Shown in pieces: positions 1,566 to 63,917 of a stretch of DNA of 64,000 bases. The notes below the pieces were generated by a model. That model made no database searches. It saw only the letters and a list, made by a program, of their open reading frames with translations, and was not told the DNA's origin. A program made the position numbers and the translations under genes. Within the stretch, counting starts at the first letter, position 1. Each line of letters starts with the position of its first letter. This stretch comes from Penicillus capitatus (lineage: Eukaryota > Plantae > Chlorophyta): positions 1,363,197-1,427,196 of the forward strand of contig OZ287694.1 in the NCBI GenBank assembly GCA_965649825.1, written 5' to 3'.

Positions 1566-2636
1566 CTATCCGGCGCCGATGCGATCGTACGGGAGATCCA
1601 CACCTTCGGGATAGCTCGATGGATCATCGTCTTCCAGCATGATGTTGATCAGCGTCTGTCTCCGGCGCTTCACTTGTCGACTCATCTCTTTCAATTCCTC
1701 AAGCGTTCCGCTGAGCAAGAGAGATTCGAAGACGTCTTTGTCGTAAGGCGGCTTCATTTGAGACAGTTCCAAACCGACGGACACCACGGGCATCGCGCCA
1801 TGTCCTATCTATCACCATATCAGCATCCATCAAGGGATTGGGTGTGAGCGTGTGCGAACAGACTTCGTATTGAACGACTTCATCACGGCTGAGAGGATGC
1901 ATGTCGGTTCGACTTCCTGATCCCACCGAGTCCTGAGGCGTTATGCGCCCCTTTGTCTTTGTGTGACGTCGCATCGCTGGAGCCGGGCGCTTCTTCGACC
2001 GTCCCTTCGTTCGCACCAGTCGCCGATGGGGGTCTCTTCGATTGGGACGCGATGTTGACCCTTCGCTGTAGCTAACCCCAGCTGTCACATCAACGCAAAC
2101 GCCGGGAGGCACCCCTACCTGTCCTCCTCCTCCTCCCCATCGACATCGTCGTCCTTATGATAATCTTCGTCACCCTCCGTGTCCGTCTCGTTCTCTGTTT
2201 CGTACGGCGCTTTGCGCGTCGCTCCGACCATCGTGAGGGCCTCTCTCAATGATCCTCGCATTTCCGTCTCGCCTCTGCACGAACATACCCTCTTGTCACT
2301 CACTGTACGACACGAGTAGGACTGTGCTCCCCACTTCGATGACCGCACTTCTGGGTCGCTCAACACCTTCTCCAGCAGTTCCTACGTTGTTGGTGCGTCG
2401 GTCGCTCGACGAGGCGCAAGCGGCGGCGTCTTACGACGTAAGTCGACTCAGAAATATTGAGGTGTTTGCGTAGCTCTCCTAGGAGCTTTTGCTTCGACTG
2501 CACGACACATGTGACGGAGACAATAGCCTCGTGGTCTTGTGGACAGTACCCAGTCGAGTTTCACAACGGACAGCGCTTTGAGCACAGCTTCGAACGCTTC
2601 GCGTTGGTTTCGGCGGAACTCGGCATCCTTCGGCAT
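1566..2636 (-). CDS. ENT (EMSY N-terminal) domain protein
   Basis: Hand-spliced model with 4 GT-AG introns of 47-55 nt gives MPKDAEFRRNQREAFEAVLKALSVVKLDW|SKQKLLGELRKHLNISESTYV|ELLEKVLSDPEVR, which follows the ENT pattern (EAY..VL+A...W.KE.LL.ELR..L..S....ELL). It continues into an acidic stretch and ends ...LPYDRIGAG*. Confidence 0.7.
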
Positions 2637-2685
2637 CGTGTCGTATGTCCGTACGTGCGTTCGTTCGTTCGGTCGCGCGTTGACG

Positions 2686-3330
2686 ATGGACATCACACCG
2701 CCGCGACTCTTCCCCATGTGCATCGTCTGGGTGCCGATTCCTCTTATCACTTGGCTCCTGCCGTTTGTCGGCCATCTTGGCATTGGTCGCGCCGACGGAA
2801 CGATTCTCGATTTCCTGGGGCCCTATCACGTTCAGGTCGGCAACTTCGGCTTCGGTCATCCTGTGCGTTACTGGAAGTTGGATCCGAATCAGAGCGGCGC
2901 CTATCGACCCAGTGACGACAAGACTGTGGAGGAGTGGTGGGATGATGAGCTCGAGCATAGTGCGATGTTTTTTCGGACGCTGTTCTACAATTTCTGTGGC
3001 ACGAATTGTCACTCCTTTGCGGCATTCTTTCTTAACCAAATCGATTATCGCAGCTCCATGCAATGGAACTCCGTGCTGCTCGCGTGTATTCTGTTTTTCA
3101 GAGGGCGCTATGTGAGTACCGCTGCTGTTTTGAAGGCATGGGTGCCGTTTGTTGTATTGATGTCTGTGTGTCTGTACCTTGGCCGGATGTTTGTCTTTGT
3201 CTATTTGGCAATCGCTGTTTCGGTGGTGGTCTACTTTGCTTTGTACGAATATGTGTTTCGAGCACAATGGCGATTGCTCAATCGACATCGATACCTTCGA
3301 TCAGATCGATTGGATCAACCGACACTTTGA
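2686..3330 (+). CDS. TMEM222: TMEM222 / RTE1-like membrane protein
   Basis: Motifs FPMCIVWVPIPLITWLLPFVGHLGI, DFLGPY, FGHPVRYW and YNFCGTNCHSF, plus C-terminal transmembrane helices. Intronless. Confidence 0.9.
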   Translation: MDITPPRLFPMCIVWVPIPLITWLLPFVGHLGIGRADGTILDFLGPYHVQVGNFGFGHPVRYWKLDPNQSGAYRPSDDKTVEEWWDDELEHSAMFFRTLFYNFCGTNCHSFAAFFLNQIDYRSSMQWNSVLLACILFFRGRYVSTAAVLKAWVPFVVLMSVCLYLGRMFVFVYLAIAVSVVVYFALYEYVFRAQWRLLNRHRYLRSDRLDQPTL

Positions 3331-3370
3331 GAAGTGTGTGAGATGCACACATGATGCGACCCTTTGCGAA

Positions 3371-7690: not shown

Positions 7691-9262
<1,572 letters not shown>

Positions 9263-10673: not shown

Positions 10674-13600
10674 ATGGATGGCTCTTCGCCTCCCCAACGC
10701 AAAAACGAAGAGAAGTTACACGTCGTCCGTCTATCAGAGGGCGTTGCTCTTTCCGTCCCTCCACTTTACGACGCCCTTTCCGAAGTGACGGAGTGGCCAC
10801 GCTTTGAGGATCTTGCCGTCGACGAAGCGCTCTTGACCGGAGCCATCACGACCGTCACGATGGCCCAGTTGCGGTTCGCTGTGGCACATCACCAACGCGG
10901 ACAGCACTGGTCCTGTTATCCCACTTCCTTTCAGGCACGACCAACGCGTTCCTTGTTGGAGTGCGTCCAGGGTCCCAACGAGACACCCCTGATGCCAGCC
11001 GTTCGCAAAAGGGCTTTCACGGCCGACGCCTCGACGCGACGCAAGAAACGCATTGCCCTAGAACCCGCCGCCGAATCGGACGACGCCTCCGAAAAATCGT
11101 CAAAACAAGGACGCTATCGATTAAATAAGGTACTGGCGGAATGGGAGACCATGGACTTTTTCAAAGCGACACCGAAACAGTGGAAAGCGATCCGGTGGGC
11201 AGCGGAGAGTCATCCAGGAATTCGAGCCAAGTTAGAAGAAGTGGCCGTAAAAAAGAACTGGGCAGTCATGATCAAAAAGGAACTCCCACGCGCCATTAAA
11301 CTGCGTCAGACCATTACCAAACGACAGCTCCAAGATGCCAAGCGCATGGCAGATCTCTGTCGACGCGAAGTGCGGAACGATGCGGCGAAGAACGAGAGAG
11401 AATCGCAGAAAGCGACTCAGGGGATCAAGAAATTGGTGAGGGAGATGCTGACGTTCTATAAACGAAAAGACAGACAGAATGCCGATCTGAAGAAACAGGC
11501 TGAGAAAGCAGCAGCCGAGCAGCAGAAACGCGAAGAGGAAGAGAGGGAAAAGAAAAGACAGACACAACGCCTGAACTTCCTCCTGAGTCAGACGGAGCTC
11601 TATTCCCACTTCATGTCCAAGAAACTGGGTCTGTCTTCTGAACCAGCTGCCCCTTCTGCCGAAGGTGAACGCGTGATGTCACTTGAATGCTATTGAATTA
11701 TGGATGAGGGGTATGTTTGTGCAGATCGAGAGATGTGGATGGAGGCGAAGTGTCGGGCAGAGACGGCGGCGCAGGCCACTCTCGACAAAGCTCAACAGTT
11801 TGATGCAATGTACACACGTTCAGAGACGATCGATGCCACCGAACTGACATCCGACAGTTTGATGCATCCCTCTTCGATGCCGATCAGCTCTTCTGTTCAG
11901 CAGCCTCGGAATTTCAAAGGGGCGCTCAAGTGCTATCAGCTGAAGGGACTCCAATGGCTGGTCAACCTCTACGAGCAAGGATTGAATGGCATCTTGGCCG
12001 ATGAGATGGGCCTTGGTAAGACGATTCAGGCGATTGCCTTCATGGGTCATCTAGCCGAAGAAAAATCCATCTGGGGACCCTATCTCATTATCGCCCCGGC
12101 CTCGACGCTGCACAACTGGGACAATGAACTCACACAGTTCTATCCAGATCTCAAGGTCTTGCCCTACTGGGGACACTGTTCCGATCGCAGAATCCTGAGA
12201 CAATGCTTCAATCCACGCAAGCTCTATTCCTACAACGCTCTCTTCCATGTCGCGGTCACCTCTTATCAAATCCTCGTCCAAGATGAAGCTTATCTAAAAC
12301 GTGTCAAGTGGCAGTACCTCATTCTGGATGAAGCACAAGTCTGTTGTTCTCATTGACTTCTCTTCACTTGATGTGACGTTCAATACTTAAGGCAATCAAG
12401 AGCAGCACCTCGGTGAGATGGAAGACGTTGCTCTCGTTTAGCTGTCGCAACAGAATTCTGTTGACCGGAACGCCGATTCAGGTGTGTCCATCCCGTTGAT
12501 GTGACAGACGATACTGATAAATGCATCATGCAGAATAATCTGGCCGAGCTGTGGGCGTTGCTGCATTTCATCATGCCGACGCTATTTGATAACATGGATC
12601 AGTTTAGCGAGTGGTTTTCCAAGGATCTCGAAAATTTTGCCGAGGGAAGTCAAGAACTCAACAAAGAGCAGCTGAAACGTCTGCATTCCATTTTATCGCC
12701 TTTCATGCTGCGCCGTGTCAAGTCCGATGTCGCCAGTCGGCCAATCGATTCGACACGCGTATGTATCATCTCACTGGATGGACTGTAGGTGAACTGGTGT
12801 CCAAGATCGAACGGGTCGTCTACTGTGACCTGTCGAGACGTCAAAAGGAACTCTACCATGCCATCCAAGAAAACCTCAATCTGTCGGATCTCTTTGATTC
12901 AGACGACAAAAAAGTGGTCAATCTCATGAACCTCGTCGTCCAGCTTCGAAAAGTGAGGGCCACATGGGGAATGTGTGAGAGGAGGGCATCGTCGCGCGTA
13001 GGTCTGCAATCACCCTGAACTGTTTGAGGAACAGAAAGAGAAATTGCCTTTTCACTCTGCCAAGATCTTGCCGTCTTCGGCCAACGGAAACGACGTGCGG
13101 TTCGTCGGGCAAATGTCCTGTCTGCATAACGAAATGCCTTCTTGCGTCTGGTCTGAACCCCTCCGCGGCACATCCTCATGTCTCTCAGGTCACTCTTTTT
13201 TCTTCTCACTGTCGATTTCGAAAAGAGTGAGATGTCAGGAGCTGAAAAGAGTGATTACTATGACAAATGGCTCAACTTACGGTTCAACATCTTTGAGCCG
13301 CTCAATGTGTGGTGGGGTCATCGTGAGAACGCGCATAGTGTTGCATCAGTCTTGCATCTGGGTCAATGCACGGCCATGGATGCCATGTCGATGCAACGTG
13401 CTTCTTTTCTTGAAAACTGGCTGGTTCTGCAAAACGAGGGGCGTTCCGTGCCTCTCTTGGTACGGGATCTTAACGCCGATAGTCTTCTTGGCGGAAGAGA
13501 TTTGATTCAAACCTGGCCAGAACGCCTCTACGGATCGATGCATCTGCTCAAATCTGTGCGCAAAGGATTTGTGCCAGCGGTCCGCGCACCGCCCTTCTGT

Positions 13601-14516
13601 CTGTACGACATCCTAGAGCCACGTTGGATGCGACATCTGCTGTTTGGCACCAATGCCAATGCAGCGACAGAGGACAAAAGACTCTCACTCTTCTGGCCAT
13701 GGTTTCGTTGTTTTGGCGCAGCTCCTCAATCGCAGATGTACGCCTTGGCCAAAAGTCTCATCGATTCTGGCAAGATGCTGAAATTGGATGAACTGCTCAA
13801 GCAGCTGAAGGCAGGCGGTCATCGCGTCCTGCTCTTTTCCCAGATGACGATGATGATGAACATTTTAGAAGATTACCTCAGTTTCCGACGATATAGGTAT
13901 CAACAACTGCATCAATGACCTGTCGATATCAACGGTGTGCAGGTATCTGCGTTTGGATGGGCAGTCAATGATCTCTGATCGCCGAGACATGGTACACCAC
14001 TTTCAGACGAATCCAGATATCTTTGTCTTTCTCCTTTCCACGCGTGCTGGAGGTCTGGGCATCAATTTAACTGCAGCCGATACCGTAATCTTCTACGAAT
14101 CCGATTGGAATCCGACAATGGATTTGCAAGCGATGGATCGAGCGCATCGTCTCGGCCAGACGAAAGATGTGACTGTCTATCGTTTCGTCTGTCGTGAGAC
14201 GATCGAAGAGAACATCATCCGTCGCGCCCGGGAGAAAGAGACCGTGCAGCAGCTGGTGATGACGGGACAGATGATGAAAGATGCCACCGATGTGTTCGCT
14301 CCGGAAGATGTCGTGTCCATTCTGTTGAGCAATAAAGATCAGCAGCAGATGACACAGCAGAGAAGGACAGGACTGTTTAAGCGATGGCCAATGGACAAGA
14401 AAAAGACCAAAATTCTGATGAAGGGCGAGAGCATCGAGATTTCGCATGACAACGATGGAGAGAAACGTAAGGCGGACGCCACGTCGCAACAGAACAAGAA
14501 AAAACGTCGGCGCTGA
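10674..14516 (+). CDS. INO80: INO80 chromatin-remodelling ATPase
   Basis: DBINO region ([19 protein letters not shown]), SNF2 motifs [19 protein letters not shown]|AIKS and LLTGTPIQ|NNLAELW, and helicase-C [30 protein letters not shown]. Confidence 0.95.
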
Positions 14517-14821: not shown

Positions 14822-17800
14822 ATGGTTTGCAAATCTCCCTCTTACGAAGAGGCGGAACAGAGAACCTCGGGACGCGACACCAGCATCCTAACAACGAGGA
14901 GTCTCGGCGCCCGTTCTCCGCCTTGTCCGTTATCTCTTGTCAGCAGACTCAGTACAAACCCTCTCAATTCCACACCATCTCACTCGAAGATTGATGCAGG
15001 CTTCAACAAAACGCATTTGGCCTCAGAGTCGACTGCGCCATTTCAGCGTTCCTTCCTACAACAACAGACCATTCGTTTCGATCTTCGTCACAAGTACGTC
15101 CGTCGTCGCGGTGCGTCGACAGCACGGAGGGACGGTTTGGACTATAGGACTGAGAACGTCATGGACCGAAGAGGAAATCTAGGTAACAATGTTGTAAGCG
15201 CCGGACCGAGCGAGCCGTCGACCTCTTCGAAGCTGCAGCTCAAGTAACGCCGATGCCGCGGCACATCATAGACTGACCCATCCTTGTGCCTTCAGACGGT
15301 CTCTTCTGGCAGCACGGGATCACAATAGCTTTGTGCGTAACGTGGATTTGACGATTCAGTATATCAACCCAGATGTCTTCGTCTCAGACGACATCATCAT
15401 CCCAGAACAAATCGCTCGGCTAACAAAGACCGTGGATGAAGATGAAAAGCGACTGCGAGAAATCGACGTGGAATACCGCGGAGAGAGTGTTTGGAAAGAT
15501 GCCTCGCAGTTTCTCAAGCTATTAGAAGATGGCCTATATCACGTCAGATCAGCCATGGGAGAACTCAGACAATACATTCCGGCCCCGGCCATGAGCGATG
15601 ATCGATATCGCAGAACGCCGAGTCTCGAGAGTCTGGAGTCGATAGTGTCTGAAAGGGAGGCCTGTGCACATCTCCTTAAGGTCGCCGTGCAACGCGGGTA
15701 TGAAGTTATCCAGGAACGATTTACCGATTGCTTACGTCTGGTGACGGACGGCCTTCATGGAGAACCGCCGATGATCGATGCGACATCAACGACCTGCATC
15801 TCTTGTGCCTCTCAGGCCATTGCCCTGCTCGAAACGATTGTTGTTTTCGAAACCGAAACGCATGGACTGGATAGAAATCAATTTGCACTTACGATTGAGC
15901 AACAGATTCTCAAAGAGCGGCAACAGTCGCTCGTCGATATGTTTCATGCACTTTGTCGTTATTTGATGTGCCTTCATGAAAGCCTCTTTTTGACGGAGCA
16001 TCTCTTCGCCAAGGGACTTCCGTCGATTCAAAAATTAAAAAGCATGGCGACGATGATGAAAAGGTGCTGGACCCATACACGGGATATCATGAAGCGGATG
16101 ACGCATACATGTCCGATGTTCAAGGAAGTGGCTCATGAGTACTTTGGTCGAGCGTTATGGCACGCCGCATCCTTGATGGCTAAAATGCAAGACGTGGACG
16201 ATGTGCAGGCATTCCTGGAGCATGCCAAAATCATCTCGTACAACGCTGAAGTCGTGAGGGATGTGGTGAAAGGACAGTTATGGCTGTTGCCTTGCCTGGA
16301 GCAGATACACAGTTTGATCTCGAGACACGTCCCCCGTCTGCAATCGCAGCTGACCGACGGCACATCCAAGCCTCAAAAAACATCCCAGCTTCTTCGCGAT
16401 CTCAAGAAAGTGATGTACGACCTCGTGATGATGACTCTCGCCCGGGCCTCGTGGTTGAGCTCTTATCCGGAAACGCCTTACCTAAGGCTGGCCAAGGACA
16501 TCAGAGATCAAGGGACCCTCGCCTTCGTGCTCGTTTCGAAATACACCCGCTCGAGAATTGCACTCAAGTGTGATCAGGAGTGCACTGTTGAGGTAAAGGC
16601 CCTCTTTTCAATCCATTGCTCATGATGTGACGTCATCATCTGCTGCAGGATGTTTCGCTGTACAGTGCGCTGGTCTGTGCCACGAATGAACTGCGAAATG
16701 CAATCTTGCCCCTTCACGATCTCGTCCAGCGGCACAGCTGCATCCACGAAGAACCGGAGTCGACACTCCTGTCGCCCCACGATTCGATCGACTCTGGATG
16801 CATTAAATTCCATGAGGTGCCTTGCATTCGTCGACTGAATACCGACATCTCGATCAAACCTTACCCGGTCACGATGGACGGTTCAATTGAGTTCGAAGCG
16901 GCACTCATAGCCGTGGAAGCGGAGGAGGCGGCTATGCTACAGCCATCATCCAGTTCACGCGACTGGATGCTGTCTCCCTGGGCAACCGATATGGATTCGG
17001 TTAGTGACGATGAGGAAGAGAAAAGAGAGTCTGCATCGAATTCGGTCGATATTATGTCCTTCCATCAAAAGTCCAAGGTGCACAGTCTCGCATCCAGTAC
17101 TGCCAGTCTCGACCTGCCGACAGATTTCGTAGACATTGACGAATCCAACTCTGGCGAAGTGGACTCAGCCTTCCAGAACGGCACGGCACCTAGGAGAGAA
17201 TCCACTCGAGATGGTGCGGCGATCGCAGCAAACAAATCGCAGTCGAGATGCGAATCTCTGTCCCCATTTGAAACGCAGCAACCGGAGAAGCTCCCTGAGG
17301 CCGCCGCCGCCGGCTGGGGTGGTGGAAATACGAATAACGATGGGACAACCGAGGCTATGTCGACGGGCATCGTGGGGGTCGTTTCGTCGGGTCTCGTTAA
17401 GGATGTCCTGGCCGTGGATTTGATTCCGGGACCCATGATCGGCAAAGGCTCCGAAGGCCACGTTCTGAAGATGTCTTATCACGAGACGCCCGTCGCTGTG
17501 AAGATCATGAATCACACCTGCCACAGAACGCGCGAGCGATTCAAGAACGAAACCAAACTCCTCAGCAAACTCACACCCCATGACAACATCGTCAACTTCG
17601 TCGGACGCTGTACCGATCTCAAAGCAGGGGAGCAAGACGCCGCGGCCGATCTCGTTATGGTCATGGAGTTTTGTGACCTTGGCAATCTGTACAAGATTAT
17701 CAGCGAGGCCAAGTACAGCAGTGCCTCTCCATACCGCATGATGTGACGTCTCTGTTTTTAGATGGATCTGTCAGTTGAACGAGATCGGAAGAGATTTGAC

Positions 17801-18395: not shown

Positions 18396-20121
18396 TTCAA
18401 GCTCAAACCACGTTTCCTACCACCGCATCAACGTTTAATGTTATGACTATGTTCGTCGTGTATCAGCTTCTCAATTCTTGTGCATTCATGAACTGGGACA
18501 TACTTGTGCGCGCCGCCTGCACTGATTAGGTTGCATTTGAGGGTTGGATTGTGAACGAGCTCCATTATCGTCGTGCAGTTTCTGTTATGTGCGTTTATGA
18601 CACGATCGCAATGTCTTAGTCTCTGTGGATCAAACCGCTTTGAGAAAAACAAACCGAATCTGCATTCATCATTTTGCCATTAGTTTCGTGATTCTACCCG
18701 TTGGCCTTGAACACACATATGGAAACGTTGAGGTGTCGGCGGTTTTGCAAAGGGTACTGTGCATTGAAAGAATCTTTAAAATGGCTGGTCGTTTTGAGCG
18801 TTTCCATGGATGACGAGATCTCGCGCATCGAATGACGACACGTGCGGTGACGGACGAGATCGCCGGGCGACTCGCCTCCCTGGTTGTCTGCAACGTTCGC
18901 GAGCAGAGGTCACAATCTTGACAAGACACTTGATGTGACGTCTGTACAACATAACATTCACCACTGCATTGTAGATGGGATCGGGCGCCATCTCGAAGAA
19001 GGCTGCGATCGATCGCAATGCGGCGGAAAAAAGCTAGAGAATCGATCGATGATGAACAGCGGCTGTGATCAGGCGTCGATCAGGAGTCGTGCATGCTAGT
19101 GTACCATTTGCCATCTATCTGTCTGGTGGAATGCATGAGCGGGTAAACGGGTGATCGCGCGAACGGGTGTTTGTGTCCTTTTGTATTGGCAATGCTCGTG
19201 AACATGCTGTCTGTTATGTAGGTCCGTTACACTGTCATCAGCTTTCTAGGACAAGAGTCCGGTAAAGGAGACGCTAAACAAAAAGATCAGCTTCATTCTG
19301 CCATCAGGCTCATGGTGACTTTCCTTCAATGCCCATGTAACGAAAGAATGTTTACCCACCACCTATAATGACCGTTTACACGGGAATTGAGGCGATGCCA
19401 TGAGGTACTGTATGTCATTGTCTTCCTGGAGCACCTGCGAAGCTTTGACAAAAAACGAGATCGGCGCTCCAAAGCTCTATAACCTCATTAACCGTGCCGA
19501 CCAAAATGCAAAAGAGAGAGCGAGAGTGTGTGTACACGTCGTCATCAGATAAGTAGTCAGGACTCAACTCAAAGTGAAAATCTAGTTGCACATCATCGCT
19601 GGAAACCTTCCACTGAAACGTCTTCCATCAACAAGGAAAATGCTGCTTCTCGATACAATAATGAATAAAGGCTCCACCTTTCATGCATTTCCAGTGATGC
19701 CAATAACAATCCAATCGTCCACCCACGGGGCCGTCACGAGGGAAAGATTTCCAGGCAGGAATAAAAGACAGGTTAGAGTGCGCACAGGAAGATAGATCGA
19801 TAAGCACACACACAATCTTTATGAGAGAGGGAAACATCGTTTCCATGATCCATCCTTGTTTTTTTGAAGTGGACGGAGTTGATTCAAATCCCAAGAGAAT
19901 ACAACGATAACATCAACATCAACAACAACACACATAACAGAGATAGCAGATGAGTCTGACTCGGATCTTGCTTTAAAAGGGAAAGGCTTCCTGCAGACTC
20001 ATCGCCAAAAAATAAACTGGTATCTTGATGCATCCATTCATCGGGTGTGAGCTATCAAAGACTTTAGGAGCACTGTCACGCACTCGCAGATGGGGTGAAA
20101 CAAGACATGAATGAAAAAGGA

Positions 20122-20276: not shown

Positions 20277-21504
20277 TTAGGAGATCTGGAGGACAGACAG
20301 CTCAAGGTATCTGTTCTGCAAGTATTGACGATTTTTTTCACGGACTGCGCGTCTAGCCTCGTCGGGAGACACAAAGGTAATCCAACCCTCTCCGCTTGAA
20401 CGCCCCGAGGTGTCTTTATCGATCTGTACCGATGTCGGGATGAAATTGAACGATTGAAAAAACTCTCGGATCTCATGCTCTGTCACGCGGAACGGCAGAC
20501 CACGTACCCGTACAGTACTACCATCATTCGTGAAGTGACGAATGTGTGAGAAGGGACTCGAGACAAATGGATGAGATCTGAGAGAGAGATTAGAAGGCAA
20601 TGTCATCGCAGGCATCGCCGATGGGCCCATGCTCCATGGCATGCCACTTGGCGCCAGATGAAAACCTCTACACACAGCATCACATCCACCTGTCACATCA
20701 TCAACATCGTGATCTTTCGATGCTTACGGCGCTGGAGGTGTCGTCATGGATCTGTTCAGAGTTGGGTTGAGTCCCATTTGTGGGAGATACGTTTGTGGGG
20801 CGAAGCCCGGAAGCCCGTACAGCGCAGCCGCAGGGAGCCCCATAATTGACCGCGGCTTTGGCGTCTTCGGAATCGCAGCTGTTCCGAATTTGACCTGATC
20901 CTCCATTTCCTGCTTAGGCACGTGAAGCAGCTTCACATACCTATCGCCAATATACTCCCCATTCTTTTGCATCGCCTGTAACAAGACAGCCATCGCAACG
21001 AGGCAGATGATCTTTTCTTAGAACGCTTGCTTACACGCAATGCCTCCTCCGTTGAGTCAAACTCTGCAAATGCCTAGAGAACGCACAACACGATGCGAGA
21101 TGCGTGCGATGACGGCGTTGCTATGTGGAAAATTTTACCAGTCCACTTGGCCGTCCGTCCGATTCGAGCACGAAAGCAACTTTCCGAATTTCGTATTCGC
21201 TGAAGAAGTCGTAGATTTCTTGCTCCGTTGTCGAATAAGGCAGTCCTTTGAGCTTCAGAACACAACTGTCGGACATCGGGACACTGCGCAGTTTGTTCGG
21301 CGCTGGCGCTGAGCAGAAACTGTGTGGCGCCGCTGCCAAAGGCACGCTCATGAGAGGGTGCGGTTTGTAGAGGACGTTATCCGGGGTCACGCCAGTCGGG
21401 ATGTTCAGCGAGTAGTCTGGCGGCATAAAAGTCAAGCCAGGTCCAGCTCCGGCGGCAAAGAGTCCCGTCGTATCTGAAGCGAGAAGCTCGTTCGTCGGCG
21501 CCAT
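20277..21504 (-). CDS. hnRNP F/H-like (quasi-RRM) RNA-binding protein
   Basis: Repeated qRRM motifs LKLKGLPYSTTEQEIYDFF and VRVRGLPFRVTEHEIREFF...GRSSGEGWITF...YLQNRYLELS. Start approximate. Confidence 0.8.
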
Positions 21505-21715
21505 ACGTAGATTCTCTTTCGTCGGACACAAGACAGACATACTCTGAAGTCGAATGCGGGCAGAGAAATGGAGAAAGCGCGAGTGGATGAAACTGCGTTG
21601 CACAGATGACAGGAGGTCCGCAAACAAACACGTCAGCAACAGCGATCAGTGAAACGCGCAAACGATGGCTGTCACATCATCGGCTCCTTTATTACATCGA
21701 CGCTTGCAGCTCAAT

Positions 21716-41369: not shown

Positions 41370-41437
41370 CGGTTCCGTTTTGCCTCACTCGATAGAATAA
41401 CCAACCACCCGGGCGACGCGCCGGATGATGTGACAGG

Positions 41438-48690: not shown

Positions 48691-48892
48691 CTTCCGTCTG
48701 ACAGCCCGCGGACGGTGGAAACGGGATCCGCAGTGTCCCTCGGCGCGAACGAGCGACTGAGAGGACAGCTGCTGATGGAATGTCGTATATAATGAGCTGA
48801 CGTGAGCCGCTGTTTGTAATTGCTACATTTTCTGGAGCTTTCAACCTCGACGCAGCACACTCCGTCTTCTTTGCCGTGAGAGTCTACCTACG

Positions 48893-49337: not shown

Positions 49338-52300
49338 CTAACTAACAGCGACAGTAAACTGGAAGGCATGTAATCCCAACTAGAGAGAGAGAAAACCATT
49401 TCGTGTTAATTTTTCTCGTCAAGTTTTCTCGTTCTACGCGCTTCGAGCGGGCCGAAAGCTTACACAAGTAGTTAAGCAGGTATGAGTGTTGGAAGAATCT
49501 CGACGAATGCCGCGTTCCACTCACAAATCTACTCATCTGGTACTATGGTTGGTACCGTAACAACTTCATTTCTGATCATGAAACCGTAAAAATACTGTCC
49601 CGCCTCACTTGCAAATACGATACTAACTCTTAACCGAATGAGTTTCAGACGTTGTACAATTCATTGAGTTGGTATGTGCATAAACTCGATCAATGCACAG
49701 ATCCGATGACGAAAGCAATTAATTTATGTGTTCATAAGTTTTTTCTTTTGTGCACGATTTTTATTGAACCTAACGTATAACAACAGCCTTGCAGAGCTCT
49801 TTTTGTGGAAAGGTTACAAAACAGATTTATCGTCCGGTTGCTTATCATGTCTATGAAACTGTCAGAAGGATTGAAACGTCACATCGAGACTGCCTAGATT
49901 TCCAAGGGTTCTGCCTCCGAAGGGGCGCTCATAAGGGGTTCACTGTTACTTGTCCGGCCACATCCTGGGTATAAATCCGTGAATGTGGACATGTAGGAAC
50001 CTTTGCTCTGTAACTGTGAAAGCTTTCCTTTGACAGAATCTTCTGTGTCTGATGAGCATTAGACGACCTTGCGGTTTGTGTGGGTGTTGGAAATGCGGCG
50101 GTTAACCACCTATTGTAGCCCATCAAGGACGGTTGGGTTTGTGCGTAATTACCTTGGCGTTCTGGCCATCGGTCGCGACGGGTGTTAACCTCCGACTAAA
50201 ATTTCTACTAACCGTACTGCGATGGTTATGGAAAAAAATACTAAAGTTCGCTACCGTTAGCCCTGAAGGTCAGGGAATCCTCAACCATCCTGGATATTTA
50301 AAGGCAGCAGTTTCAAGTAGGATAACCCGTGTTCTCTGTATTAACATTCGTGTGCGTTTTCGTCGAAGTCGTTTACCTGTGTCTTCACTCAACTCATCTC
50401 GAATTCGTTCACACACTCCCAACAGTAGGATTCTTAGAAGTCTTCAGTAACTCAGGCAGTTAGATTGCGAAGAAATCTTGTTGAGTAGCCAGAGTGCCAG
50501 GCGGTGTGGATGAAAGGAATGATATGGACGACTGCCATTTCCAGTTGTTCTTTGCGCGACGTTTTTCTTCGAACTGAATAAGTGTGACGACCTTGTTTGT
50601 GAGGTGATTCATGCATCCGTAGGTAAGTCGTTCTGAGTCAATGAAAAAGTAACTGTTGGAAACACTCAATTGAGCTTGTTAGCCGCTTACTTGGCTTTAA
50701 GCACCTCTCTTATACTGTCTCTTGTAGCTAGTAAGGATTTAGGATAACTGATAAAAGCACGGACTCTTCCAGGGCGAACGAAAGACGTGACAACGACAAT
50801 GAACAGTTATTGACCCGTTACTTTAAATGCATCGAGCGTTGATATGCTTGGGTTGTTTTGGACACGCGTTTCGAACGACATGTTTAGTGAAATGAAGAAT
50901 AGGTATTTCATTGTTTTTGGAGAAGCGGTGGGTTTTGCAAGCGTTTTTATTCTACAAAAAACGCATCGATGCTTGTACTGTTAGATCGCTCAAAATGCGT
51001 TGCTTGAGTAGTGATGGCCATGTGAAGACTCGATTGGTTTTTGTACATTGCGGAAGAAGATGTCTGTGTGAATGTAGCATTGTGTTGTATACATGAAAAG
51101 ATCGCGACGGGGAGGCAATGCATGATGGTGATGTCTTGACAAGCGGCATGACATCATGTGGTATTTTGAGTTCCCGAACGAGATAATCTTATATTCGCTT
51201 CCAGCCAAGAACTACTATTGCAGTGCTTTTTTCCACGCGATTTGCGCCTAACGGAGGTTATCGGCTGAGAGTTCTTTAAAGGCCGTTGCTTGGTATCGTT
51301 GTAGGGAGTGTTATGGTCGAATGTTCTGAAAGTTGTGAGTCGTAGAAACAATGCGAATGGTTTCGTCCTTGCCTTGGTTCGAAGTTCCGGGTATGTAGGT
51401 GATGACGTAAAACCGCTTCAGTTCATCATGGCGAAATTAGAGATCTTTCGAGATCACACGAGCTGCTGATCCATGCAATATAATGATTAATGTCTTCGTG
51501 ACTTTAATGCTCCTCTACAGACATCTCGAAACTTCATAGACCGTCTGCGTTTCGTTTCTACTGGTACATCTCTATGAACTTTCCTTCTTATCCTCTTGAT
51601 CTTTTTGTTTTGGAAGGTCTTCAAACTTTAAGCATTAGAAGGTAAAGCCTGTTTCCAAAGAGCTCACCGTTAGGAGTCTTCTTCACATGCAATTCGCCTT
51701 AAACTACATTGCAATGGTATTTTTAGCTGATGTACGCGTATAGCAGGTAGTCCGCACGAATAACCGAAGTTTCCATGATCATGCTTCTGCTCATCATCTC
51801 CTTTTCCACTAGATTATGCTGTATTCGAGGCATGCGTTTTTTCTCGATGGCCCTATCCAGTTAACACTATCTATCATTCTTGCTAATGAGGTAATTCCAA
51901 CAGCTGTCCAAAAAACAATCTATCTAAGAATGCTACATGACTTGTGTAGTTGGGAATAGCTGGTCATACAAACCCAGGTCGCTGTCGCCGGCCTCGCAGG
52001 GAAAACGAGATCACTGCGGAAGTTTCACAAGCTTTCGGAGCAAGGTAACACTAGGTCCAGATAGTCCCTTAAATACTTGCGTGATGACGCTACTTCAGAG
52101 TCAGATGAATCAGCCCCACTGTCAGCACCACAGAACAGCGTCCCTAAACGCACTTGGACCTTGTCTGACAAGACAGTGAAGGAAGGCCCCCTAAGCAGAT
52201 GCCCCCTTGCATAACAAGACAGTCACATCGACAAGGAAATCTTGGCGACAGTCGCATGATTTTTCAGAAAATGCATCGCCACTTCAAGGCGTCGTTATGG

Positions 52301-53731: not shown

Positions 53732-53850
53732 ATTTCAAACAGTTTTTAAAGCACGCTTGCTTCTAGTGGCACATCAAATCAGGTCCTATAGTTGAGCGAC
53801 CGAATTCTACAGAGATGACAGAGTTATTTTGTTTTGTTATGTGGAGCTGC

Positions 53851-54872: not shown

Positions 54873-57800
54873 TCCGTAATGCTCCGACTCACAGTCGCCA
54901 CGAATCGCTTGAGAAACGGTGTCTTCGACGGAAACGAGGGTGAATTGCGCGAAATGGAGAGAACGAAAAATGAAAGCGTTAAGAGGGACAGGTTCTTGAT
55001 GGACATGTTCGCGACGCTTCGACGGTACCTTCTCCTCTCGTTTTGAACATGACGTGGCCCTGACCCAAATCTGTGGTTTCCACAAAGGGCGAGTCAACGC
55101 AAACAGTAGCGGATCGGAGAGGGCGAGTGAAATCTGTGGCACTAAAATAAGGAGGACGCGTCGTTTCAGCTGCTCCGACCCGTCGTGTACGGCAGTGCAG
55201 TAGTGAGTGGTGGTCCTCTGGGTCAAGGCTAACCTCGGACACAGAAGACGTAGGCATGCTACGGTTTGTACCTTCAGCTTTGTAGTTCAGTCACAATTTG
55301 GACATCGCGCCTGGCATCAGATGCATTCTGAGGGAATAATGGCAAACAGTCAGTCTCGTCGTAGTCCAGTCTCACACCTTTCTTTTCCACAATGGCGAAA
55401 AAGAAGCTGCTCGGAAAAGCCAAACAGTAAAGAGCGCGATGGCTGTTTCGTTAGTCCTCCTAGAGAAGCGACATAGCAATGTTATGTAAAGTGGACACAG
55501 GAGTGAGATAAGGTTCGGACAAACCAAAGTGCATCCAAGGCGTCATCAGTCTGGCAGACGTCGCGATTATTCCATCTCTCTTCAAATGACGCATTAGTCA
55601 GTTTCTTTCTATTCGATAGCTATAATGGATAAAGTGAGAGAAAGTGAGTGAGGCGTGGAGCGAAATGAATACTAAGAATGGTCAGGATGCTTAACGGCAA
55701 TGAACAAAGCAATCGGCAAAGCAAACGCTTACGTCCGTCCATGTTGTCGATGAGGCTATCAGAACAGGGTCTCACACTTCGAGGCCGCGTTCGTTTCCGA
55801 GGCGATAGTACCAGATAAATGCTACTTACTATCATTCAGGAAGAGCAATGCATCATCACTGGTTGGAGACGTCAGATCGAAAATGGGTGGGATGAGTGCA
55901 CAGTGCTTGACAAGTGGTAGCCGTCGTTCTTGTTCTTCAGATCAGTCCTTGGCAATGCACGACTTTGGATGTCTTATGAAACATTGATATTCGAAACGGG
56001 TCTCTGTTTTACAAAAAGTCGCCTGAACACTTGTACCTTCGAAAGATAGGTCTCGGTTTCTGCGACACGAGGCTATCAAATCTGTCAAATCGCCTAGAAA
56101 CGAAGGCTTTCTACGCATTTAGGCGTCCGGTATCGAGTGTCTTGAGTGTCCGCCCGACAGGACAATGTGATAACCATATTTGACAGGGCTCTGTTCGGCA
56201 CAGCATAAAACGTTGATGTGTTTTCTCCACGAAGTTCCGAGCGACAGACTTTCGAGAGAGGCAAGGACACTGAGCCGCCTTGACGCCGTTCGGTGAACAG
56301 CACTCTAAGATGACACGGATTCTTCGCGCAATAGAGTGCTTTCGGTTTCGCCCTCGACGTTGTCGCCGGCAGCTCTCGATATCCGAATAAAGGCAGTGTC
56401 ATTTCTGTAGGATAGATGACCTAATAACACGTTTTATTCCGCCAGTAATTCATGTCTCAGAACTCTGTACGACGATGCGGAATAATCGTCTTGAATGGCG
56501 TTACGATTGAAAAGGAATACAAACAGTAGGATGAAAGATTGTGTGTTTGTTCGTCTCAGAATGGTATCGTCCAAAACGCGCTCCATACAGTATTCAAAAG
56601 GCATGAGTTCGATTTGGCCCTTCTGGACGCCACGCAGGTTTTTGGGGTTCCAGAAGAGAACTATGGCGTTCGACATTTTGATCTGGTTATCTCATTATGA
56701 GTTTTGCAATCACACAAAAGAAGATCAGACGCCCATTTGCTGCGATCAGAGGCGTCTGCTATTCGTCTTGAAGTTCAGATTCTGGAACCGTCTGGAACCG
56801 TCGGTGGATGGAAAATGTGTTTCGCCGATGCTTGAGTAGAATCTGTCGTTCTGAAGATGTTGCGCTTCTGCAGCAAATAGATCGAAGTGTCTGCTCGCGT
56901 AAATAAAAAACGGCCATGAAAAGACGATGACAAGGTCCGTGTTTCAACACATCCTCGAAGAGGCTTTTCTATGAAGACGTTACTTGTATAAACAGCGTTT
57001 TACTGTCTGTGACGCAACTGTACATACGCTGATGTATGCGGGTCACCTGATGTGACTAGTCAAGCATGCTGATCGCACGCATCATCCAGATACCTGTAAC
57101 ACTACGGAAACAGAGGACAAGAATCTACTGAAGATAGCAATAGAACTTCCATGAAGGTAACCAACTATAGTACCTGAAGTTGGACAGAACTGCAGTTTCA
57201 AAAAAGAAGAAAAAAACACAGATCATACTTACAGGGTTGAACAACGAATATCTTTATAAGATTAGAGAAACGATATGATTATGAGTGCGATGACAGAAAT
57301 GTCAATTACCGACGTAGGCTTTAATCCTGTCGACTTAGATGTGGTGACATGGTATCGAAATCGTCTGGTACATGAAACAAATGGTTTGAATCTTTTTTGG
57401 CGTTTTCTGTGGGGTTCGTTGAAAGCTTTTTATCCAGCTATTTTTTTAACCCTCCTACTACCACAGCATCACTCTTACTCCGGGCATTCATTATAGCGCT
57501 GGCTGCGTCATCGTCAACGGTGGTGGCGTTTGAATCGACAGAATGCGGCGTAAGATTCTTTAGTTCAGTCACATCAGCTTAATTTTTGTATTCCCCGGCT
57601 TTGTTTCTGTGCCGTGAATCTCATCTCCTACTTCCTTGCCTGTTTCTGTCGTTTATGATGCTTCGGGAATGGTGTTCTGAGCATTTCTGGGCAGTTCTAT
57701 ACTAACTTAAGTTGGATTTGTCGTGCCTTTTGTCTCATCGATCGTTAAGCTTTCGCGAAGGGAAAGTATCATTTTCTTCTATGTTTGTTGTCTCCCGAGA

Positions 57801-60017: not shown

Positions 60018-60135
60018 ATGGGACAAAGTTGACGATTTTAGATACGCAGGATATTGAAGCAAGATACGTGACCATCATGCGACTTCAAGCCTATGTGCCA
60101 ATGGGCAGTGTTCATGGCTCCTGAACATCTACTTA
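60018..60135 (+). pseudogene. Decayed duplicate of the carotenoid oxygenase last exon
   Basis: gatacgcaggatattgaagca...atgcgacttcaagcctatgtgccaatgggcagtgttcatggctcctgaacatct versus gatgcgcaggacattgaagca...atgcgacttccaacctatgttcccatgggcgttcatggttcctggacatct. TGG has become TGA. Confidence 0.75.
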
Positions 60136-60477
60136 TACTTAGAACCACCCATCGGATGAGGCCTCGAAACCCATTGAGCTGAAGGTATCACAACTCCGCT
60201 TCTTGGCTGACCAAAGAATGAAATCCATTCTTTGTTTACTTAAAGCTATTAGCCGCTTCTGCTTTCGGAAGAGGCAAAGAAAATGGACAGTCTAGTCGTC
60301 AAGGAACGAGGCCAAGGAAATAAAGAAAGGACATTCGACCTAGATAAGAGTTTAGTCGCTCCCTCCTTCACGACTAAGTACAAGTCTCTTAATATAAACA
60401 GTAGATATTGACGAAGGCCTCCGTATAGAATGGATTTTCCAAACGTTTCTACTCTGCTGCTGATCGAACAGATCGTG

Positions 60478-61330
60478 CTACAGAATGTGTTCTTCGTCAC
60501 GGATGTAGTCCCCGACGTCTGCTTGGTGCAGTGCCACGGTCGCCGTGGGATCGATGTCTCTGCACTGCGCTGTTGTGCGCACGGACACGGCGAAGCCCAG
60601 TGGGATGTCCGACATGCTGTAGACCACCACGCCGGCATTCACTGGCATGTTCTCCGTTATCCTCCCCACTCCCGACTTCAGGATGTGGTGGCTGTACAGG
60701 AACTGCTGCTCGGCAGACGGCTTGACCCAGATCTGCAGCAGCACACGAAGATCTCAGAAGCAGGAGGAGCTTAAATCAGGCGGATGCAGTCATCATGAAG
60801 ACCGATGGTCATCATCAGGGATCCGAGCTCCTCGGCGGAAAGCTGAAAAATGGCAGGAATCATGCCGCGCACGGGCGGATCATCCGCGAGCCGCTGTTCT
60901 CTTCACGGGAGCCCTTCACCCGAGTTCCGCGCCTCACTTTGCAGACGGCGTTGTCGGCGAGCAGATCGAGGGCGCCGATCGTCAGGTGGAACTTCTTGCT
61001 GTGCGTGAACTTGCCGATGCACGTTCCGAGGCCGACCAGATCTGCCCGGGGTATCTACAAAGAAGCCCAACTAGGCGCTGGACGCGGGACGTCGAGACGC
61101 AGGCGGACGTTCACGGCGCTCCGGACGAGGCTCTCCCTGGCGTAGAAGACCTTGTCCCTGTGCAGCCGGAAGCAGTGGCTCTCGCCGCCTCGATCCGTCA
61201 GCTTGGAAAGGTTGGCGCCGACGTACTTGAGAAGCTTCTCGAAGACGAGCTTCGCCTCCTGAAGGGATTGGGTGTCTCGCGAAAGCGAGTCCAGACGCTT
61301 TGAGTCTACCTCTTCGGTCAGCGGTCGCAT
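60478..61330 (-). CDS. NIP7: NIP7, copy 2
   Basis: Same exon structure as copy 1; the only protein difference seen is E to D (LTERGG versus LTDRGG). Confidence 0.95.
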
Positions 61331-61536
61331 CTTCCGTCTGACAGCCCGCGGACGGTGGAAACGGGATCCGTAGTGTCCCTCGGCGTGAACGAGCGACTGA
61401 GAGGACAGCTGCTGATGGAATGTCGTATATAATGAGCTGACGTGAGCCGCTGTTTGTAATTGCTACATTTTCTGGAGCTTTCAACCTCGACGCAGCACAC
61501 ACCGTTCGTTGTCTCTGCCGTGAGAATCCGCTTAGA

Positions 61537-61960
61537 ATGCCTGGAGGGCGACCGAAAAAAGTGACATGGGAAAACATGAAAGAGGGACTGACGAAGGCCG
61601 AAATAAGTGTAAGTGACGTGTAGAGCGCCAGGCTTCGTTTCTACATAAGCTGTCCCTCTCCAGGCGGATTTGAGCAGAATTTTGGGCAAGAAACTCGACC
61701 TGAAGGAATTGGGTCGGTTTGCCCTTCGTAAACCGTCCCGAAAGAGTCCTCCTCGTTCGTTAGGGATCGAAGATGACGAGTTGTACGAAGTAGACTTCAT
61801 CTTGAAAGAACGGACGACCCCCGAAGGAAAGAGAGAACTACTAATCCGATGGAAGGGATACGGCAAGTCCGAAGACTCGTGGATACCAGAAAACAATCTC
61901 TCCTTGCCGATGTCGGCTTATCCTTTTCCCGGAAAGAACAAGTCAAAGGGAAAAAAATAA
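61537..61960 (+). CDS. Small AT-hook-like plus chromodomain protein, copy 2 (~122 aa)
   Basis: Starts MPGGRPKKVTWENMK, same intron position, chromodomain intact, TGTAA at 62011. Confidence 0.75.
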
Positions 61961-63917
61961 TGTGGTGTCAAGAGAACTATTATTAAACAGCCACAATGAA
62001 TTGGAAGGCCTGTAATCTCAATCTCTGATCAAAGCAATTCATCGTGTCTGCGCGTCCTCGATCGGCCATCTCATCACTCCTCGAACAAGTTTAAATCTTG
62101 TATAAAGATCCAAACATGATTTTTGGAAGAATCTTGACGAAAATGGCGTTTTGTTTACAAAGCCACTCGATCTGGCACGCAAATGTCTCTGTGTATCCAA
62201 CCGGACGGCTGTTTGGCGGTATCGGTGCAATCGATGGAATGATTGGCTAAAAACATGGCTTCATAGACGTGCAACGATCTTCAAAGCGTCGATACAAATC
62301 GACTTGCAACGTGTCATGTTATACACAACATGCATTTTTTAAAAACAATCTCTTCATCTCAAAGAATTCATTGAATGATTCTTCTTGTCCCGAGAAAAAA
62401 CGATGAATCTCCAAAGGCACACTCCCAAGACTTATGGTACAATGTTGGTTTTCGTTTTTTATTGTTTGTGAAGTTAGCTCTTTGACTTTCCTCGATTTTA
62501 AGCGCGGAAAATTTCTAGGAAAGATAAACGCACAAACAAATTCTCCCGATCCTCTAATGCACACGCCACTATCGAGAGAACCTCAAAGTTCTTAGTACAT
62601 TGTCATTCAATCGAGTCATTTATTCAATTCAACGACGCATCAAACGTTGTTGCCTCTTTTCCTCCAACACCTTCGTTGTGCATTTCCATGAGTTAACGCC
62701 ACTCACACAACAAACAATGCATCCAAGGATTGTTGGTTGCCTTTATGTGCTTGATCCACTATGCACATAGATCGATAAACCGTTAGACGGTTAGCGATAC
62801 TGAACTTCATCGTTATCGTTGCACCACGACTCTCTTCTTAGTGATAAATCTATTCGAAGGTATTTTGATCTGAACAGAGTCACAATTCCAGAAGCCATGT
62901 CTTCAGCGAAAGAGATCTACTGCCACGAGTCATGTCTAGATTCGCTGCAGCACAGGGAATTCTGCAATGTCGTCGAAGACGATCTGATCACTCGTTCGAT
63001 GCAACGTTGCTTTACGACTCGAATATCGTCATCCTTTTAGCTATCAGAGGACGCGTTAAACATGAGCGGCAATGATTGAAGGGACGCGCAGACATTGTCC
63101 GTTGATAGGGTCGAGTCGTTACGGCCGCCGCCGAAGTCGAGGGGTCCATAGCTTGCTTTAGCTTAGCTCCCTTGACTCTTTATTCATTGCGAACTGTGTC
63201 CATCGAGCTCTCGAACTCGACGTCGGACCAACGCGACCTGCTGATATAACGTAAGTCACGACGCGTAGGAACGGAACTCCTGAACGGCCGCATACGGCCG
63301 TTGTCTACTTTGGAAGCCGAAACAGCCGGTCCCTGAAAGACAGGACAGTCGAGCACAGACAAAGCTGTCAACAGAGACAACCAGCCGTAGTAGGTATCGA
63401 CGGTTATCTCGTCTCTACTTAAAGGACCGCGATGACGACCCCTTCTGAGACGATCCGTCCTGCAACCGACTGTGTTCGCAGACGTGTGTCAGCATCCGTC
63501 ACAATCGACAGAGTACGACGCGCGCCGAGGAATATCTGTCGCTTTGATGTGATGGCGACGGGCCCGTCAAGAAGACCGCGATTGACATTTTAACGCAACA
63601 GAAAAGCGACAGATAAAGCAGAACCTGCCGACGACCGCCTCTGCGGACGCATAACCTCCGGCGATTCTGTTTCTACAGAAGAATAGCAGGTGGAGGAGCA
63701 ATTGAGGACAGCTCGACCTGTCACATCAGTTAACGCTCCGAATCCGAAGACACTGCCATCGCCGATCGCCGTTTTTTCACGCCGTAGGCAAACGTGATTT
63801 ATTGTCAACCGTTTGAAAACACGTTTGTTTTCCAGGGCAATTCAAATTCGATTCTACTCTTGAATGATCTGCGACTATCGGAACTGTTACAGTTATTCTG
63901 TTTTGTATGCTGAAGGC

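Follow-up and report, generated by a model that had tools for sequence, protein, structure and literature searches.

Several compact eukaryotic genomes pose the open question of how very short introns with a near-absent splice-site consensus are recognized. The question is raised by a 64-kb stretch of contig OZ287694.1 (assembly GCA_965649825.1, Penicillus capitatus; the whole stretch is hereafter the window, W), in which one 9-nt word, M1 (TGATGTGAC; reverse complement, GTCACATCA; 8-mer core, GATGTGAC; oligonucleotide forms for RNA, UGAUGUGAC and GUCACAUCA), recurs in introns of about 50 nt. Counting either strand, M1 occurred in 18 exact copies, nine on the plus and nine on the minus strand, against 0.98 expected and a maximum of four in 100 dinucleotide-preserving shuffles, and the core occurred 23 times against 3.2 expected. 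Once simple (ATCG)n- and (GCC)n-type words were set aside, M1 was the commonest 9-mer of the window. We favour, at somewhat less than even confidence, the view that M1 is a clade-specific, selected cis-element of tiny spliceosomal introns, which may act at the RNA level in intron definition from the branch-site zone and, as its complement, from near the donor.

Window, relatives and gene models

The window is nuclear DNA of a green alga (GC 0.51), with Pfam matches to mTERF, INO80, protein kinase, MRD1, DnaJ, IspD, type II intron maturase, MutS, carotenoid oxygenase and CAF1. The best named protein homologues, about 50% identical, come from Coccomyxa, Bryopsis, Elliptochloris and Chlorella (Trebouxiophyceae and Ulvophyceae), and no Mamiellales were among the top protein hits for the window. 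Close relatives are represented solely by metagenome contigs, all of them syntenic with parts of the window: relative A, with 99% DNA identity (L002); relatives B1 and B2, parallel contigs from one sample that are 85-88% identical to the window (L001, L003, L005, L006); relative C, with exons 65-73% identical (L004); and relative D, with exons about 70% identical (L007). The sequence compared thus comprised the 64-kb window and about 110 kb of the relatives' loci, with about 20 kb of independent relative sequence; window positions 1-4808 lie outside the relatives' coverage.

Codon-usage gene finding scored antisense open reading frames equal to sense ones and was dropped. Because codon usage was blind to strand, the exon map was instead drawn from synonymous versus non-synonymous differences between the window and relative B in six frames, covering 4.8-26.5 kb and 30-43.5 kb. 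Permissive enumeration of GT..AG pairs gave hundreds of candidates per site, was unusable and was replaced by frame-consistent joins of conserved coding segments. Adjacent coding segments joined with frame-consistent GT/GC..AG pairs, together with manual checks, yielded 28 confident introns, with a mean length of 52.8 nt and a GC content of 0.50. Their donor is essentially GT with a weak G at +5, their acceptor is YAG, their 3′ ends are often TGTG-rich, and no general branch consensus was visible across the 28.

Copies of M1 in the window

The copies of M1 and of its core are listed below by position and strand. Sense and antisense refer to the transcript, d5 and d3 are the distances (nt) to the 5′ and 3′ intron ends, and bases kept are those identical in relative B.

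2084..2092, minus strand: M1, from the exact-match count.
12369..12377, plus strand: sense M1 lying 14 nt before the 3′ AG of INO80 intron 12339-12391 (53 nt), which interrupts the DEAQ|AIKS junction; 9/9 bases are kept amid varying flanks.
12497..12505, plus strand: M1, sense, in INO80 intron 12482-12533 (52 nt), d5 = 15 and d3 = 28; 8/9 kept; the lone sense copy in the 5′ half of an intron.
14166..14173, plus strand: 8-mer only, in the INO80 helicase-C coding exon (codons K-D-V-T); probably a chance occurrence.
16623..16631, plus strand: M1, sense, in kinase-gene intron 16593-16648 (56 nt), d3 = 17; 9/9 kept.
17739..17747, plus strand: M1, sense, in kinase-gene intron 2, 17713-17761 (49 nt), with the A of GTGAC at -16.
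18931..18939, plus strand: M1, in a 1.9-kb stretch downstream of the kinase gene that lacks conserved coding; 9/9 kept; a partial inverted partner, GTCACAATC, lies 22 nt upstream.
20692..20700, minus strand: M1, sense, in qRRM-gene intron 20668-20727 (60 nt), placed by frame logic, d3 = 24; 9/9 kept.
21671..21679, minus strand: M1, sense, in a 172-nt gap between qRRM exons, probably intronic; 8/9 kept.
23310..23318, plus strand: antisense M1, 19 nt from the GTAAGT donor of the 57-nt BTB-gene intron 23281-23337, the gene being on the minus strand; 8/9 kept; a degenerate sense copy, TGATGTCTG, lies near the 3′ end.
30016..30024, minus strand: M1, sense, in the 3′ untranslated region (UTR), about 52 nt past the stop of a minus-strand gene whose last exon is 30079-30336.
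36064..36071, plus strand: 8-mer (full 9-mer in B2), sense, in the upstream portion of IF3, with AG|GT directly after it.
36597..36605, minus strand: M1, antisense, in plus-strand IF3 intron 36593-36641 (49 nt, GC-AG), 4 nt from the donor; 7/9 kept; overlaps the word AAAGAGTGA.
37193..37200, plus strand: 8-mer (9-mer GTCACATCA in B2), antisense, in ispD intron 37154-37200 (47 nt), forming the donor GTCACATC.
37893..37901, plus strand: M1, between the 5′ parts of ispD (minus) and the maturase gene (plus); 9/9 kept.
38497..38505, minus strand: M1, antisense, one of the two arms of the perfect 11-nt inverted pair that maturase intron 38483-38533 (51 nt) contains.
38517..38525, plus strand: M1, sense arm in the same maturase intron 38483-38533, 8 nt from the 3′ AG.
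41426..41434, plus strand: M1, antisense, 3 nt past the MutS stop (TAA CCT GTCACATCA), in the spacer before an SSF transporter gene; 9/9 kept.
49878..49885, minus strand: 8-mer only, from the 8-mer count.
52222..52229, minus strand: 8-mer only, from the 8-mer count.
57048..57056, plus strand: M1; lost in relative B1.
57568..57576, minus strand: M1; 8/9 kept in B1, in a region of about 70% identity.
63720..63728, minus strand: M1 with AGGTCGAGCTGT; perfectly kept in B1 beside indel-rich flanks, and possibly abutting a 3′ splice site.

Five of the M1 copies lie in regions outside gene models. The IF3 intron is assigned as GC-AG because only one boundary keeps in frame the EIRLT|PRIG junction, which is common to relative C. 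A preliminary description of the window, made by eye, had placed the 9-mer at positions where all 18 exact copies were indeed found; its list of about 21 8-mer positions contained real sites but missed those at 14166 and 49878. The copy at 2084, which that description had assigned to an ENT intron, falls in the part of the window beyond the relatives' coverage. Regular spacing along the chromosome, as for a Chi- or uptake-sequence-like role, was rejected on inspection, since the gaps between copies range from 20 nt to 15.6 kb and the copies cluster by gene.

Alignment of the copies extends the word to [A/T]TGATGTGAC, after which comes either GT (often GTC) or AG (mostly AGGT). Among about 24 independent copies, GT followed in 13 and AG (mostly AGGT) in nine, and the right flanks include discrete subtypes (...GACGTCTC, three copies; ...GACAGGTG, three copies). 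The extended forms TGATGTGACGT and TGATGTGACAGGT hold TGACGT and TALE-type cores as strings; with TGACGT in 13 and TGACAG(G) in nine of the copies, neither core is universal, and the invariant part is TGATGTGAC.

Concentration and geometry in introns

Coding sequence called from synonymous and non-synonymous patterns held no M1 9-mer and a single 8-mer, so that the earlier statement that no copy lies inside a confident exon stands for the 9-mer but fails for the 8-mer at 14166. In an automated partition, seven of 12 non-coding copies fell in intron-like gaps, which make up 17% of the aligned non-coding DNA (p = 0.0017), which supports the intron enrichment first noticed by eye; by curated models, 9-10 of the 13 copies comparable with relative B are intronic. 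Exact copies were present in eight of the 28 confident introns, against about zero from shuffles, six introns carrying a sense and two an antisense copy; one intron holds both, and in one an 8-mer is the donor. The occurrence is all-or-none: measured by distance from the sense word, six of the 28 introns stood at 0, one at 1 and three at 2, with the other 18 at background, and near-matches with one or two mismatches were merely mildly over-represented in introns. M1 thus marks a subset of introns (about 25-30%) with no graded consensus.

Intronic sense copies are those at 12369, 12497, 16623, 17739, 20692, 38517 and probably 21671, and four of the 11 intronic copies, at 23310, 36597, 37193 and 38497, are antisense; the placement of about 13 copies in tiny introns that had been proposed is therefore confirmed for ten and probable for one more. 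Six of the seven sense copies occupy the 3′ half of their intron and all four antisense copies the 5′ half (Fisher p = 0.015), which supports the mirror-symmetric placement described earlier, on statistics that rest on 11 copies. The A of the sense copy stands at -10, -16, -16, -19, -26 or -30 relative to the 3′ AG, that is, 10-30 nt away. In three of the four introns with an antisense copy, a sense copy, complete or partial, is also present 10-15 nt downstream, and in the maturase intron the two arms form an inverted pair (38495-38527; 11-nt arms and an 11-nt loop; fold z = -2.5). In ten of the 11 intronic copies, the GAC end of M1 points towards the nearer exon boundary, whichever the direction of transcription, and the copy at 41426 likewise points its GAC end towards the MutS exon 6 nt away. 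The preliminary description had M1 forming the GT donor twice around ispD; the copy at 37193 does so, but the second, at 37893, was not confirmed. Promoters hold at most one copy, the same 37893, in a divergent promoter region.

Conservation of M1

The M1 sites were chosen in the window only and the state in relative B was read afterwards, so the latter is an unbiased read-out. M1 bases were identical in relative B in 112 of 117 cases (95.7%), compared with 406 of 519 (78.2%) at non-coding positions up to 25 nt away (Fisher p = 1.3e-6), and 9 of 13 copies were perfectly kept. In a screen of all non-coding 8-mers, GATGTGAC ranked first for conservation and frequency together, with nine of 12 occurrences perfect against a background of 0.35 (p = 0.006). 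The 55-64 kb region, in which identity is 70-75%, contains the perfect copy at 63720, that at 57568 (8/9) and the lost one at 57048. Sense copies kept 70 of 72 bases and antisense copies 33 of 36, the difference between antisense copies and their flanks having p = 0.06. M1 is under purifying selection and has been held nearly invariant since its gain.

Origin of M1 inside older introns

The density of M1 in relatives A, B1 and B2 (85-99% identity) is like that of the window, and no copy was found in 16.5 kb of relative C or in 13.3 kb of relative D; the sequence read from relative D corresponds by synteny to a part of the window holding seven copies. Orthologous intron positions were set by translated searches across splice junctions. 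At the same positions as M1-bearing introns of the window, relative C has introns without M1 in the maturase gene (44 nt, GTAAGG...TTTTAG), ispD (305 nt, GTAAGA...) and IF3 (37 nt), and relative D has them in the kinase gene (intron 2, 41 nt) and the qRRM gene (44 nt). At the ispD junction (...QTPQ|VIKPELL...), where relative C has GTAAGAAAT, M1 took the place of a canonical GTAAG donor. In kinase intron 2, the A of the M1 GTGAC, at -16, occupies the position of the A in the CTAAG of relative D.

Between the window and relatives A and B, no indel of at least 20 nt was found over 35 kb, and hence no intron was gained or lost among them; all differences in M1 state among W, A and B are substitutions. 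Because introns shared with C and D lack M1, and because the differences within W, A and B are substitutions only, M1 was installed in older introns: the comparison shows that it arose by sequence turnover in introns that were already there, in the ancestor shared by W, A and B, after the split from C and D. The same introns with and without M1 across graded relatives (99%, about 86%, about 70% and farther) constitute a natural experiment on how an intron signal is born. An erosion of splice signals in step with the gain of M1 was also considered; the orthologues in relative C look canonical, but those in relative D are already as weak as the introns of the window, so no link between M1 gain and signal erosion was found.

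A proposed RNA-level role in intron definition

Considering these results, we propose the following scenario for M1, which we hold tentatively. M1 would act on the pre-mRNA. The sense copy would lie in the branch-site or 3′ zone, with its A 10-30 nt from the AG, and could supply a UGAC branch site, and the complementary copy would lie at or near the 5′ splice site. M1 would thereby help to define introns of about 50 nt whose donor, branch and acceptor signals are very weak. Where both copies are present, the two ends of the intron could pair, and in the single-copy majority M1 would be read by one sequence-specific partner, either a protein or a guide-like RNA. An RNA-level role is favoured because introns are several-fold denser in M1 than other non-coding DNA and the sense copy is placed in the branch zone and is better conserved, and also because the antisense copy is at or near the donor and the arms are complementary and sometimes occur together. 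Should M1 rely on pairing or on a dedicated reader, it would represent a new mode of intron definition. A search with Rfam of the window and its relatives found only a tRNA-Met, with no snRNA genes and no structured RNA partner, and to our knowledge neither C/D-box snoRNA and K-turn elements nor complementarity to U1, U2 or U6 gives a convincing match to M1.

Several points weigh against this scenario. The splicing function of M1 and its use as a branch site are deduced from the sequence. The folding of motif-bearing introns is unremarkable (mean z = -0.5, compared with 0.0 for the others; not significant), and ordinary folding, together with the predominance of single-copy introns, indicates that end pairing is not a general mechanism. 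A reverse complement on RNA requires pairing or two readers, whereas a reader of double-stranded DNA (dsDNA) covers both orientations at once. The ratio of sense to antisense copies in strict introns (7:4) is not significantly different from 1:1; adding UTR and relative-specific copies makes the ratio lean towards sense, though by softer assignments. Copies also exist outside coding introns, 3 nt past a stop (41426), in a 3′ UTR (30016), in spacers and in unassigned non-coding DNA (18931 and 37893), and in at least one intron deduced for relative B, M1 abuts the AG (d3 = 2), too near for its A to be the branch point. The sample is small, comprising one 64-kb window and about 20 kb of independent relative sequence.

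A more far-reaching version of the same joint reading, which we regard as rather unlikely, is that a single self-complementary word forms a new layer of intron definition, its forward copy marking the 3′ zone and its reverse copy the 5′ end of introns of about 50 nt, as an 'address code' written de novo into pre-existing introns. Such a code, equally unlikely in our estimate, might be read by pairing, either mutual or with a guide-like RNA, or by one factor that senses intron DNA relative to the exon.

Beside these proposals stand two observations on intron ends and neighbouring words. Introns starting at 5120, 33550 and 40678 begin A(A/T)|GTGTGAC, that is, with a sense TGTGAC at the donor, which suggests that the quasi-palindromic core GTSAC could serve at either end of an intron. 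Another over-represented non-coding word that is also conserved, AAAAGAGTGA with GA or CC after it, has 12-19 copies (for example, at 5159, 9858, 13223, 13247, 13685, 30368, 31778, 36603, 37541 and 38507); in sense it resembles an exon end with a GTGAGA donor, and in antisense (TCTCACTCTTTT) a branch site with a pyrimidine tract. It sometimes abuts or overlaps M1, as at 36597-36610, at 38506-38525 and, as GTGAGATGATGTGAC, at L005:9522.

A possible site for a dsDNA-binding protein

The main rival to an RNA-level role, which we consider on the unlikely side, is that M1 is the site of a sequence-specific dsDNA protein, such as a three-finger zinc-finger, Myb or homeodomain-type protein or a domesticated transposase, oriented by the nearest exon or nucleosome edge. 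Its placement would then reflect, with the same modest likelihood, the fact that introns and tiny spacers are the only non-coding DNA of a compact genome. Both orientations occur and both are conserved, and a dsDNA site explains them and the mirror geometry in one step. The all-or-none occurrence of an exact 9-11-mer is typical of a high-specificity DNA reader, the GAC end faces the nearer exon boundary in ten of the 11 intronic copies and at 41426, copies extend beyond coding introns, and the extended forms hold the strings TGACGT and TGACAGGT.

However, introns are several-fold denser in M1 than other non-coding DNA, promoters included, and sense copies are better conserved than antisense ones. 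The distance to the exon edge is 0-28 nt rather than fixed, and the right-flank classes differ by a 2-nt insertion (GAC|GT versus GACAG|GT), which would be awkward for a rigid protein-DNA interface. The likeness of the extended forms to bZIP and TALE-homeodomain cores, which the preliminary description had pointed out, is real at the level of strings, but the concentration of M1 in introns rather than promoters argues against ordinary promoter sites of these types. If M1 is nevertheless a DNA site, regulatory or chromatin information would be housed in the intron 'linkers' of a compact genome.

Mobile-element, branch-point and stop-codon explanations

The idea that M1 represents relic terminal inverted repeats of an Introner- or MITE-like intron-generating element had been put forward first, and we now consider it quite unlikely. 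In its present form it holds that M1 copies are the ends of a very short palindromic or MITE-like element (GTCACATCA, 10-15 nt, TGATGTGAC) that created introns or was secondarily inserted into them and then eroded. A perfect 11-nt inverted pair with an 11-nt spacer at 38495-38527 and three or four introns with an antisense copy and a degenerate sense copy 10-15 nt apart are consistent with it, the mirror geometry is as expected of paired terminal repeats, the discrete right-flank subtypes (GACGTCTC and GACAGGTG) hint at copying, and the motif is clade-restricted. Introners of one family, however, are alike at both ends or end to end, with all-versus-all BLAST matches at E <= 1e-5 (Gozashti et al. 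2022, PMC9860276), and among the 28 introns with 20-nt flanks no pair reached this level, the longest blocks common to intron pairs being 11-17 nt, that is, M1 and a few bases.

Target-site duplications were likewise lacking, with the upstream exon end matching the intron end in one of 28 introns at k = 3 and in none at k = 4 or k = 5, M1-bearing introns being no different from the others. Inverted repeats amounted to one perfect 11-nt pair and three or four degenerate pairs, 0-28 nt inside the intron, and mostly a single arm is present; the copies generally lie off the intron termini. Five M1-bearing introns exist at the same positions in C or D and so pre-date the motif; none varies in presence among W, A and B, where only substitutions and no insertion-type indels are seen, and the introns of W are not longer than their orthologues by the length of an element. 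M1 bases also stand far above their flanks in conservation, unlike neutral relics, and a metagenome scan of JGI contigs for the extended inverted pair retrieved seven palindromes, all unrelated, and no relatives. Intron age, the selection on M1 and the outcome of the similarity and duplication searches thus leave an origin as relic terminal repeats unsupported. A weaker form, the secondary insertion of a palindromic element into existing introns, has low probability and leaves the conservation and the absence of insertion-type differences unexplained. M1 is a clear counter-example to taking every repeated inverted intronic motif as the scar of an Introner.

It is very unlikely that M1 is the plain branch-point sequence of host introns. 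M1 holds UGAC, which fits yUnAy, the A of the sense copy lies at a suitable 10-30 nt from the 3′ AG, and in kinase intron 2 it matches in position the CTAAG of relative D. Against this, exact copies are found in about 25-30% of introns and the rest lack any graded likeness, four of the 11 intronic copies are antisense and conserved (33/36 in B), copies occur in spacers and UTRs, and the copy in the intron deduced for relative B abuts the AG. In addition, the pairing of M1 with the conserved U2 GUAGUA box would involve only three bases. The all-or-none pattern, the conserved antisense copies, the spacer and UTR copies and the AG-abutting copy together rule out a plain branch site, and both orientations and the mirror geometry uphold the earlier view that M1 is not simply a branch point.

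A stop-codon trap, in which TGAtgTGA would close two frames (three with a preceding GTGAGA) and send retained introns to nonsense-mediated decay, is exceedingly improbable: TGA does stand in two frames of M1 and the composite GTGAGATGATGTGAC, at 38509-38525 and L005:9522, closes all three, but any stop would serve, an exact conserved 9-11-mer is left unexplained, and the trap is rejected because the antisense copy has no stop codon, yet is enriched and conserved.

Other features of the window and its relatives

Synteny between the window and relative B2 breaks at window 30061 and L003 8054, the window and relative A sharing the same arrangement, and in both genomes an M1 copy (window 30016; L003 7991) is no more than about 40-60 nt from the break. 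The 1.9 kb at 18400-20280, between the convergent kinase and qRRM genes, contain the M1 copy at 18931 and (ATCG)n runs and align with relative B throughout; this stretch showed no conserved coding signal and no Rfam hit, and could be a fast-evolving gene or a non-coding transcript. Short microsatellite-like runs of ATCGATCG, or (ATCG)n, are the commonest 8-9-mer of the window, mostly non-coding (17 of 21 for CGATCGATC), at sites including 5584, 19008, 20171 and 35365-35384.

Intron 8379-8428 (minus strand) starts with GTATCCTT, which is the donor consensus of U12-type introns, and TTCCTTTCTCAC stands 13 nt from its AG; relative B1 keeps the donor but not the branch-like TTCCTT. This intron may point to a minor spliceosome in the host alga.

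A segmental direct duplication relates window 47407-49379 to 59222-63995 (and 53849-53931 to 63916-63998), with 84-100% identity and a spacing of about 12.64 kb; it is single copy in relative B, in which the gene order near CAF1 is rearranged compared with the window. A tRNA-Met gene at 35281-35353 (plus strand), between the DnaJ-side genes and IF3, has equal scores in B2 (L003:13299) and C (L004:8222), and its position is thus conserved. In sample ERZ26696514, the megabase-sized contigs ctg303793 (L001/L005, 149x) and ctg303802 (L003/L006, 154x) share the same genes and gene order at about 96% identity; they could represent haplotypes or subgenomes of the relative, or strains of it that occur together. 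Relative C encodes, at L004 600-2400, a HEAT-like protein with a 111-nt (37-aa) tandem repeat (...FPEKA.DAF.LFSTMC...). The TTCCAGAWA words enriched in relative C, considered as a substitute motif for M1, belong to this coding repeat and were discarded.

Comparison with known systems

The BOC1 introns of Mamiellophyceae, which are located in the low-GC part of the big outlier chromosome, are shorter than 75 nt and below 43% GC, with no conserved motif reported (Verhelst et al. 2013, PMC3879977). They resemble the host introns in being short, in being many per gene and in showing no evident conservation of donor or branch signals (PMC3879977). Unlike them, the introns of the window have a GC content of 0.50 and carry M1, and the host is not a mamiellophyte by protein evidence. 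As no Mamiellales were among the top hits, the idea that these are BOC1 introns was dropped on protein taxonomy and intron GC, although their mean length of 52.8 nt does fit.

Introner elements and MITE-type introners share with M1 a repeated sequence in algal introns, an inverted-repeat geometry and a clade-restricted distribution. They differ in that the introns bearing M1 are not similar end to end or at both ends, lack target-site duplications and do not vary in presence; these introns also pre-date the motif, which is under selection.

In yeast introns, complementary 'zipper' stems join the 5′ splice-site region and the branch-site region. Complementary segments near the ends of M1-bearing introns could similarly bring the reactive sites together, and the maturase intron has a perfect 11-bp stem; the yeast stems, however, are gene-specific and belong to long introns, whereas M1 is one word used over many 50-nt introns, mostly with a single arm. 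bZIP proteins bind TGACGT, and TALE-homeodomain proteins bind TGACAG[G/C]T and TGAT-TGAC. Their cores are present as strings in TGATGTGACGT and TGATGTGACAGGT, but M1 lies in introns, not promoters, and the invariant part shared by its copies, TGATGTGAC, is neither core. The TGAT-TGAC half-site spacing of the animal PBX-MEIS site differs by one base from that of M1.

The nearest known things to M1 are the high-information intron signals confined to particular lineages or intron classes, namely TACTAAC of yeast, TCCTTAAC as the branch site of U12-type introns, and the motif in which Trichomonas and Giardia fuse branch and acceptor. Like M1, they are near-invariant, short, selected and lineage-specific intronic words located in sense in the branch or 3′ zone. 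A literature search for the motif string returned no description of M1, only incidental primers. M1, found in an unsampled green-algal lineage and absent from the searched literature, differs from these known signals: it is present in about a third of introns, has its exact complement near the 5′ end, occurs in some spacers and UTRs and is little complementary to the U2 branch-recognition box, and its gain is recent enough to be traced.

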